DNA from: Trichosphaerium sp. ATCC 40318
Lineage: Eukaryota > Protista > Tubulinea
Direction of reading: 5' to 3'
Length of the DNA: 64,000 bases
Assembly (NCBI GenBank): GCA_038496445.1
Contig: JALMLS010000195.1
Location: 1 to 64,000 of the forward strand
The position numbers were made by a program, and so were the translations under genes. This document shows positions 49,401 through 52,400 of this stretch, one piece after another (within the stretch, counting starts at the first letter, position 1; the number at the start of each line of letters is the position of its first letter). Below the pieces are notes generated by a model. That model did no database searches and was not told where the DNA came from. It worked only from the letters and a program-made list of their open reading frames with translations.

Positions 49401-52400
49401 TACTTATCCATGAGTACTTTAAAGATAGTAGTTTTAGGAACAACAATACTCCTCAAAGCTTCCTTGAGTAGATCTTCTTCTATCTTTGTAGCTATCATAT
49501 CCGATTCAAGCAAAGCATCGGTAGAAGGCCTATCTTCAGGATTCCACTGTAACAACCACCTAAAGGGAACATGTATAAGTGGCTTGCCACAATACAGATC
49601 GAATTCAAACACAAAGCGTACCTAACAAGGGTAACTATGGTCTTAGTGAACGGCTTGTCTTCTTGTTCATAATTTTCTGGGAATACAGGGGTAGGTTGTC
49701 TCAGGCCTTTTAGAACTTGTGCTCTTTCCATTCCAGTATTGAACTTTGTACACATTTCAAATAGAATAATACCCAAGCTGTATATATCCACTTTATGATC
49801 ATAGTACTTATCCTTCTTATTACCCTTACCCATACCGTTCATTTGCTCTAGACTATAAGTCAGTATTCTTTCGTTTAAACACAACTGTAAACAATTGAAG
49901 TTAAACCTCGTTTGTACCTGGTGCAAGATAAAACGGTGTGCCAACACCAAGTGTATGACCACTCTCGTCCTTATAATTAATGTCTTTGATATCAATACCA
50001 CCTGTGGTAGCTCCTTCTGATGTTGCTAACCCGAAATCACCAAGCTACAACAATCGTTAGACACATAATAAACTAAATTCTAAGTACAACCAAATAACAT
50101 ACCTTTACATTCTTGTCTTCGTCCAAGAAAATATTTTGAGGTGAAGTTAAGGCAAGATTAGAACGCTTGACTTAAAAAAAAAAAAAAAGCACTTGAAAGG
50201 ATATTGATGGTTTTAAATCACGATGTATAACACCTTGAGAATGCACATGATTAAGACCTTCTACTATTTGTCTGAATAAACGCCATATTTCATCCTCAGA
50301 TTCTATACAATCGTCTATAGCCTAAAAGCAAAGCATTTTAGTTAACAACAAATAACAAAAGAATAAATCTTACAGCACGTAGAGTCTTTGATGTACAATA
50401 CTCCATCTGTATGTATAATATCCTTTCAGGTTGCTTTTCACGTAGAGAAGCCCGTCTCTTAGGCTTCTGTGCAGTGACTTCCTGATTCAAAAAAATAAGA
50501 AACTTGGCAATTTTTTTTTAATGCTGTTCGCTTACCTTATGGTCATCAAAGTCATTATCATGGAACCCAAAAGCATCTTCGAAATTCATATCACCAATAC
50601 CGTCATTAAAGTTTCTGCTACCCTTGGCGCTAATAGTCATTGTTGATAGACTTTCAGCAAACCAATCATCGCTAGCATTACTATAGTTATTAGGAGCGCC
50701 AAACTCTATACCGACAGGTGTTGAATGAATGTCATCGTCAGATGATGTCTCACCGAACGAATTATCTACTCTGACATAAGAACAAACAAATAAGAAAGCA
50801 AATGGGTTGGCTTATCAAAGTGGATGATTACTTTGATGTGACAAACTAAGACAACAAATACAAAGGAAAACAAATACATACCAGTAGAGTCTTGATACGA
50901 TGAAGAGGCAGTTCCAGGAGTATCACATTCTATCCAAGCTTGATAATAACGTACCTGAAAGTAAAAGAGAACTTAAGAATATGACAACAACTGCTTATTA
51001 AAGAAGTTCTTACAACATTGTGATGATGCAAACGTGCAAGCGTTTCAACTTCACGCCTTATTTTTCGCATGTACTGCTCATTGGTACTTCCAAATTTCAC
51101 TTTTTTAATAGCGTATATACGTCCATCAAGAATATTACGAGCCTAAAAGGTAACGCCCTCATGTTAGCATTTGAAATAGAATACTCAATAACAAGTAACT
51201 TACCTTTACAACATACCCAAAACCTCCTTCACCGAGAGTTTGAAGCTCATCAAAATCATTCACGTATCTAGAATTAGTTTGCTGTACAGCCGATGCTGCT
51301 CCTGGTGGACCAAACAAAATCAAAGGACTCTCTGACTGCTGCCTTCCTTGCATCTAGAACGACTATTAATTGTGGTAAAAAACTGTTGGAATGTACTGGA
51401 GGTGGGGAAGAAGAATTCAGCCACTGGCTCACTGAGTTTGTAGCCATAGAATTAGTAGGACTAAGTGGAATACAAAGGGATGTATTTTGGACTAAAGCTA
51501 CAGAACTTGTGACAAACGGCCGTGAGATAAGCTGCGAAGCAGTTGGACGATCTGATTCATCTCTAAAAAGATGGAATAAGCGACTGAATGTCATGAACTT
51601 TGGCTCCTACGCCTACGCACTTTGTCCTACATGCTTCTACAAAGGTCCTTCCTTCTTCTGATAGAGTTGATGGCACCTTATTTTGACCTGGGTACCCACC
51701 TGCCATCTCAACAATAGCACGGCCAAGTTGTTTTATGTCTCGCTTTTTAGGTGATCTAAAAAGTGGTTTAATATGATAAGATCATAATCGTCTGCAACAT
51801 ACGATGAACTTCCACCGCGTGCTGACATATAATACAGCATATTTTTATTATCAGCTCTGTTGTTAATCATATCTATGTAAGAGAATGTATAAGAGTTTTA
51901 TGAACTTTTTTTTTTGGTATGTTATTGAGTTTACCTGCGATTTCAACACCTGCAGCCCAATCCGCTAGTTTTATTACGTCATTTTGAGATACAAGTATAT
52001 TAGAAAGCTTGATATCATTATGAGCATATCCTTTGCTATGAAGGAATTGAATGGCTTGCAATAGTTGCCTATGTTATAAGTCAAAATCTTAACAAACAAT
52101 ACCGTCCCTTTAATACCTTGTGTATAACCTTATAATAGGCTCTTCTAAGCGTTTTTTCTTTCTTAATAATTCTTCAATGGACCCACCAGTAACATACCTG
52201 CAAAAAGAAATCAATATTAGTTATACAAGCGCACAAATAAACGTGGCAAAAAAAATCATTGTAAAATCAAAAAGCTGACAGATCTGCGTACTCTGAGAAA
52301 ACATATAGCATATTTTCTTGATACTGTACGCCAATATAGCTAACTAAATTTTTATGCGATAGCGACCTTGCTTGTTCTATTATACGAATAATCGCATGAA

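Follow-up and report, generated by a model that had tools for sequence, protein, structure and literature searches.

A predicted 69-nt U12-type intron with AT-AA termini in the catalytic loop of a protist GCN2 gene

On the minus strand of the window (the whole stretch of 64,000 nucleotides analysed here), the kinase part of a GCN2/eIF2AK4-like gene breaks off after HRDLKPS and resumes 69 nt further on with the residue that completes the catalytic loop, which raises the question of how the intervening nucleotides would be removed. The first-pass annotation had read them as a U12-type intron with the rare termini AT-AA, and had proposed that a minor spliceosome may gate this amino-acid-starvation kinase, possibly by switching between active and kinase-dead isoforms. 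We sought to establish which excision the locus requires, whether the genome encodes the matching machinery and whether a regulatory reading is justified.

The GCN2 gene around the interrupted loop

Exon-by-exon tblastn with three full-length orthologs revealed the five regions of GCN2/eIF2AK4 in the host gene, namely RWD, a degenerate pseudokinase, a kinase with an acidic insert, a HisRS-like region and a C-terminal domain. The kinase exons match Pfam Pkinase, and the Pfam order in ortholog P0007 is RWD-Pkinase-Pkinase-tRNA-synt_His-HGTP_anticodon2. Exons were queried separately, and local joins were made only for reading-frame tests. HMMER and word-based protein searches with the 74-aa exon at 49624-49845 returned relatives of at most 66% identity and no self match, and a genome search for another GCN2 found none, so the gene is single copy. 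It contains many short GT-AG introns; eight further introns were traced in the kinase part, all of them GT-AG and 52-106 nt long. The features flanking the interruption are as follows.

46500-54160, minus strand: GCN2/eIF2AK4-like gene, extent approximate, placed by matching orthologs P0020, P0032 and P0007 to the window with tblastn
50205-50321, minus strand: exon of 39 residues ending at HRDLKPS, from the sequence and a Pfam Pkinase match
50103-50135, minus strand: exon of 33 nt (11 residues) followed by a U2-type GTATGT donor, read from the sequence
50045-50102, minus strand: U2-type GT-AG intron of 58 nt, read from the sequence
49918-50044, minus strand: exon with the DFG and APE motifs, from the sequence and tblastn

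The upstream exon closes with ggt gtt ata cat cgt gat tta aaa cca tca, the last base being 50205, and its Pkinase match stops at profile position 127, which is also its last residue. The 33-nt exon reads aat att ttc ttg gac gaa gac aag aat gta aag; it is too short for Pfam, which gave no match to it even with its flanks included. This small exon sits between a minor and a major intron, and its recognition would therefore need both spliceosomes.

Splice signals and the choice of the 3′ end

The 69 nt carry the following elements, all on the minus strand.

50136-50204, minus strand: predicted U12-type (minor) intron of 69 nt, phase 0, with AT-AA termini; the sole excision restoring HRDLKPSNIFLD
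50196-50204, minus strand: 5′ splice site ATATCCTTT, a perfect U12 A-type consensus
50174-50188, minus strand: run of exactly 15 T in the intron body, read from the sequence
50166-50192, minus strand: nested GT..AG (gtgc-T15-aagtcaag) of 27 nt, judged a chance feature against the gene's introns of 52-106 nt
50146-50153, minus strand: branch-point motif GCCTTAAC, whose complement GUAAGGAAAAU is carried by the U12 candidate
50141-50142, minus strand: decoy AC, 5 nt past the branch heptamer and out of frame; no AC-type intron of the genome uses a site nearer than 8 nt
50136-50137, minus strand: terminal AA, 10 nt past the branch heptamer, from the sequence, the frame test and the genome census

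Read from intron base +1, ATATCCTTT (50204-50196) fits the donor pattern [A/G]TATCCTT. It is followed by caagtgc and the T15 run, directly after which aagtcaagcgttctaatcttg leads to the branch-like heptamer CCTTAAC (50152-50146, preceded by G), and ttcacctcaa (10 nt, 50145-50136) closes the intron with AA. All the minus-strand elements named in the first-pass annotation (donor, T15, CCTTAAC and the 10 nt ending in AA) were thus recovered. GCCTTAAC agrees with the branch consensus TCCTT[A/G]AC at seven of eight positions, and either 50147 or 50148 probably serves as the branch A. This would place it 11-12 nt from the 3′ end with no polypyrimidine tract between, within the optimal branch-to-3′-splice-site distance of 11-13 nt (PMC3584512).

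To find which excision the reading frame allows, we enumerated all AT, GT and GC donors against AG, AC, AA and AT acceptors around the site. The pair 50204/50136 was the only one giving HRDLKPSNIFLD, and none of the canonical GT-AG pairs in the same enumeration preserves the catalytic loop. Excising 50204-50136 joins HRDLKPS to the 11-residue exon and leaves the invariant HRDLKPxN loop intact, the Asn restored at the junction being the one that protein kinases invariably carry in their catalytic loop. An exhaustive protein search found HRDLKPxN[IVL]F without gaps in all of about 80 GCN2-like proteins, followed by ..D...K[ILV]GDFGLA, and in tblastn with the orthologs the 69 nt stood out as inserted sequence and nothing else. 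As the first-pass annotation had stated, other outcomes fail at this site: retention runs into a stop, and use of the AC at 50142-50141 leaves 5 nt over and breaks the frame. The next in-frame acceptor, an AT at +13, would remove the restored Asn. A rough estimate from base composition, taking the 9-mer donor, the 7-mer branch motif and the frame together, puts a chance origin at about 1e-8; chance is not credible because a perfect 9-mer donor falls exactly on the codon boundary after which homology is lost, the branch 7-mer is well spaced and the frame is restored.

The termini are AT-AA, neither AT-AC nor GT-AG. Despite this, the intron remains in the U12 class, since that class is defined by the donor and the branch site, and its ends put it in the documented AT-AN subclass as judged from these motifs. 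AT-AN introns are recognised as having a variable last base (PMC8280824). Of the non-canonical termini found on minor introns of animals and plants, AT-AA is the most frequent (PMC10639083); it is tabulated for human, mouse and Arabidopsis (PMC1557818) and accounts for 27% of the non-canonical U12 introns of Physarum (10.1101/2020.10.12.336362). To call AT-AA a rare variant, as had been done, was therefore an overstatement: it is the commonest non-canonical minor type, and at least two further genes of this genome need it.

The AT-AA U12 introns known from animals and plants (for example human and mouse RASGRP4 and human MSH3; Sheth et al. 2006, PMC1557818; survey in PMC10639083) are alike in their perfect ATATCCTT donor, in a TCCTTAAC-like branch site near the 3′ end and in a final A in place of C, whereas the GCN2 intron lies in another host gene and in an amoeba-like protist, and is very short (69 nt). 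AA ends also look relatively frequent here: of about 21 strong A-type introns about 3 have one, whereas non-canonical termini make up about 4% overall in animals and plants. In the amoebozoan Physarum polycephalum (10.1101/2020.10.12.336362), AT-AA is likewise a major non-canonical class and the branch A lies 10-12 nt from the 3′ end; Physarum, however, combines a degenerate TTTGA branch motif with a co-evolved U12, whereas the present genome has the classic CCTT[AG]AC and the classic U12 box. The GCN2 intron is a clear further example of the documented AT-AA minor-intron subclass.

Minor-spliceosome genes and other A-type introns of the genome

The claim that this protist has a minor spliceosome was examined by a genome search for its snRNAs. 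A U11 gene scored 66.4 bits, above the Rfam threshold, and begins with AAAAGGG at its 5′ end; a U6atac-like gene (51.9 bits) also exceeded its threshold. A U12-like gene scored 39.2 bits, below the threshold, with its branch-binding GUAAGGAAAAU and Sm site intact. This gene (G000:C49:~145161-145370, minus strand; L001:~1501-1700) is split, its first ~13 nt, agccttaaactaa, lying upstream of tgagtaaggaaaataa and an intron of about 50 nt with GT..AG ends (gtacgt...gctag) separating the two. The low Rfam score of U12 is explained by this separation of its 5′ part. A U11 gene and candidates for U6atac and a split U12 agree in part with the earlier claim; U4atac was not detected in the genome, which is a weak negative.

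The sole U6atac candidate, at G000:C20:307774-307894 (L002:1501-1621), departs from expectation in its own sequence. At the stretch that should pair with the 5′ splice site it reads GAGCCGAGAGAUGGUUAGCA in place of AAAGGAGAGAAGG, with GAGCCGAGAGA instead of the expected AAAGGAGAGA and the AAGGA box missing. No copy of the canonical U6atac box AAGGAGAGANGGTTAGCA was found anywhere in the assembly, and a search near the candidate for an upstream exon yielded none. Despite the altered U6atac box, the U12 donors of the genome are the classic ATATCCTT.

We next surveyed the whole genome for ATATCCTT combined with CCTTAAC or CCTTGAC, which gave 53 matches against 8 in reversed-pattern controls; individual patterns gave 14 vs 1, 10 vs 3 and 10 vs 0. 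Inspection of the flanking frames identified about 18 introns with a frame-compatible AC 8-10 nt past the branch heptamer and none with a nearer one (the AC-type loci include L016, L017, L018, L022, L025, L026, L029, L032, L038, L040, L041, L050, L068, L073, L074 and L075). The GCN2 intron (L034) has AA at exactly +10 and its decoy AC at +5. In all, the strong A-type introns of the genome end in AC in about 18 of about 21 cases and in AA in about 3 of about 21.

The other AA ends were found in two unrelated coding contexts. In the RabGGTase beta gene (G000:C20:~393560-393640, minus strand; L071), a ATATCCTTT...TTTCCTTGAC intron ends in AA at +8. Its upstream exon aligns with residues 80-121 of 6o60_B and adds one residue and a split Trp codon, the downstream exon aligns from residue 124, and the alignment with residues 80-145 is gapless only with AA at +8, as AG at +9 breaks the frame. 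On this alignment, RabGGTase beta holds a second predicted AT-AA U12 intron. In a tepsin/ENTH-like gene (G000:C73:68845-68909, plus strand; L023:1501-1565), the upstream exon ends at tepsin K46 and is followed by a ATATCCTT...ATCCTTAAC intron. The downstream half may also fit the tepsin sequence, and the intron appears to end in AA at +8. L014 and L013, considered as further non-AC cases, were dropped because they had no convincing coding context. Since AC lies at 8-10 nt in about 18 introns and AA at +10, +8 and +8 in the others, the local 3′ consensus can be put as YA[C/A], with the site apparently placed by distance.

Elsewhere in the window, on the plus strand at 40550-40619, GTATCCTT...CCTTAAT is followed by TTCTCAG, with frames open on both sides (...PSVQVKR | IQELLFRYRD...). 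These 70 nt are a probable GT-AG U12-type intron of another gene.

Together these observations suggest how the GCN2 intron would be spliced. The 5′ end of U11, AAAAGGG, would pair with ATATCCTTT, and the GUAAGGAAAAU box of U12 with GCCTTAAC, bulging the branch adenosine. Distance would be the main guide to the 3′ cut, which would fall at a YA-N site 11-12 nt past the branch A, in this case CAA|; the AC 5 nt beyond the branch motif would be too near for use. Exact removal would then join HRDLKPS to the 11-residue exon and yield an intact catalytic loop.

Alternatives, intron position and meaning

With the donor, the branch motif and the unique loop-restoring excision all in place, the AT-AA U12-type signature inside the GCN2 catalytic loop was borne out, and we consider it very probable that 50204-50136 (minus strand) is a constitutive U12-type intron of the A-type AT-AN subclass, with AT-AA ends, in a single-copy GCN2 gene. 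The sequence itself yields the splice signals, the constraint from homology, the snRNA genes and the spacing rule that holds across the genome; from these, removal from the RNA at 50205|50135 would be predicted. Other readings were weighed against this one. As AC is by far the commonest A-type 3′ end in the genome (~18/~21), the intron might be an ordinary AT-AC one, its terminal A at 50136 reflecting a strain polymorphism or a mistake in sequencing or assembly. This is very unlikely, because 50136 is not in the kind of homopolymer-length context by which a C would become an A, and because two unlinked genes need a YAA| end at a comparable distance, which makes AA ends a property of the genome and not a single error. 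Still less probable is a decaying pseudogene in which the 69 nt are an unspliced insertion mimicking U12 signals: the neighbouring exons all keep their kinase motifs (GxGxxG, VAIK-like, HRDLKPxN, DFG and APE) and have clean GT-AG introns, this is the only GCN2 copy in the genome, and chance falls far short of explaining a perfect 9-mer donor paired with a modally spaced branch motif.

The proposal that GCN2 is gated by its minor intron, through slow or conditional splicing or through the nested GT..AG, has a basis in mammals, where the removal of minor introns can be slow or limit the rate, and in the lower splicing efficiency of A-type introns (PMC3584512, PMC8280824). In Physarum, on the other hand, retention is no higher for U12 than for U2 introns (10.1101/2020.10.12.336362). 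The nested pair is as it had been described, 27 nt long (50192-50166), in frame and leaving 14 residues, but it has the marks of a chance feature and indicates no switch. Its length is about half that of the shortest intron of the gene (52 nt), its donor CAA|GTGCTT is weak, and the T15 run leaves no room for a branch site. In-frame GT..AG pairs also arise easily by chance, with more than 12 in the enumeration around the site, and the nested product would separate HRDLKPS from the catalytic Asn by 14 residues, wrecking the loop and giving a kinase-dead isoform. A literature search pairing EIF2AK4 with a minor intron returned only a general review of alternative splicing. A gate, or a switch between active and kinase-dead forms, thus finds no support here, and we regard it as highly improbable.

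The preferred reading, a constitutive U12-type intron, was also set against the intron positions of orthologs. No intron was found at the GCN2 site in any of the four readable ortholog loci (the fungal L004, the nearly intron-free L056, the animal L058 and L059), so that the position is shared with 0 of 4; in the animal locus, a 63-kb gene, one intron directly precedes GMIHRD and another follows ATTDILV. Ortholog intron positions give no support either way.

Within the same genome, a TKL-type kinase gene (G000:C101:47316-47384, with 47295-47384 corresponding to L060:1501-1590) has an intron that is also 69 nt long and in phase 0, with the same donor nonamer. It lies at the identical boundary, HRDLKPD|NILLD, corresponding to Pkinase profile positions 127|128 as in GCN2. 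It differs from the GCN2 intron in ending with AC 9 nt after ACCTTGAC, in being in-frame and stop-free and in belonging to a different kinase family. The two intron bodies share 16 of 42 identities, no better than shuffles, and no other kinase of the genome has a U12 donor at this point. The shared site may reflect ancient inheritance or coincidence. A broader view, which we offer as doubtful, is that minor splicing in this organism has been somewhat remodelled: the 3′ end of A-type introns would be set almost purely by distance, making AA ends unusually common (~15% of strong A-type introns), the same-boundary kinase introns would be very old or the product of repeated gain at a favoured site, and the altered U6atac and split U12 would belong to the same picture.

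By itself, the intron points to no new way of regulating the starvation kinase. What it contributes is a further lineage with AT-AA minor introns and distance-based choice of the 3′ site, along with a practical consequence: gene callers limited to GT-AG, GC-AG and AT-AC will break the GCN2, RabGGTase beta and tepsin-like models in their conserved cores.
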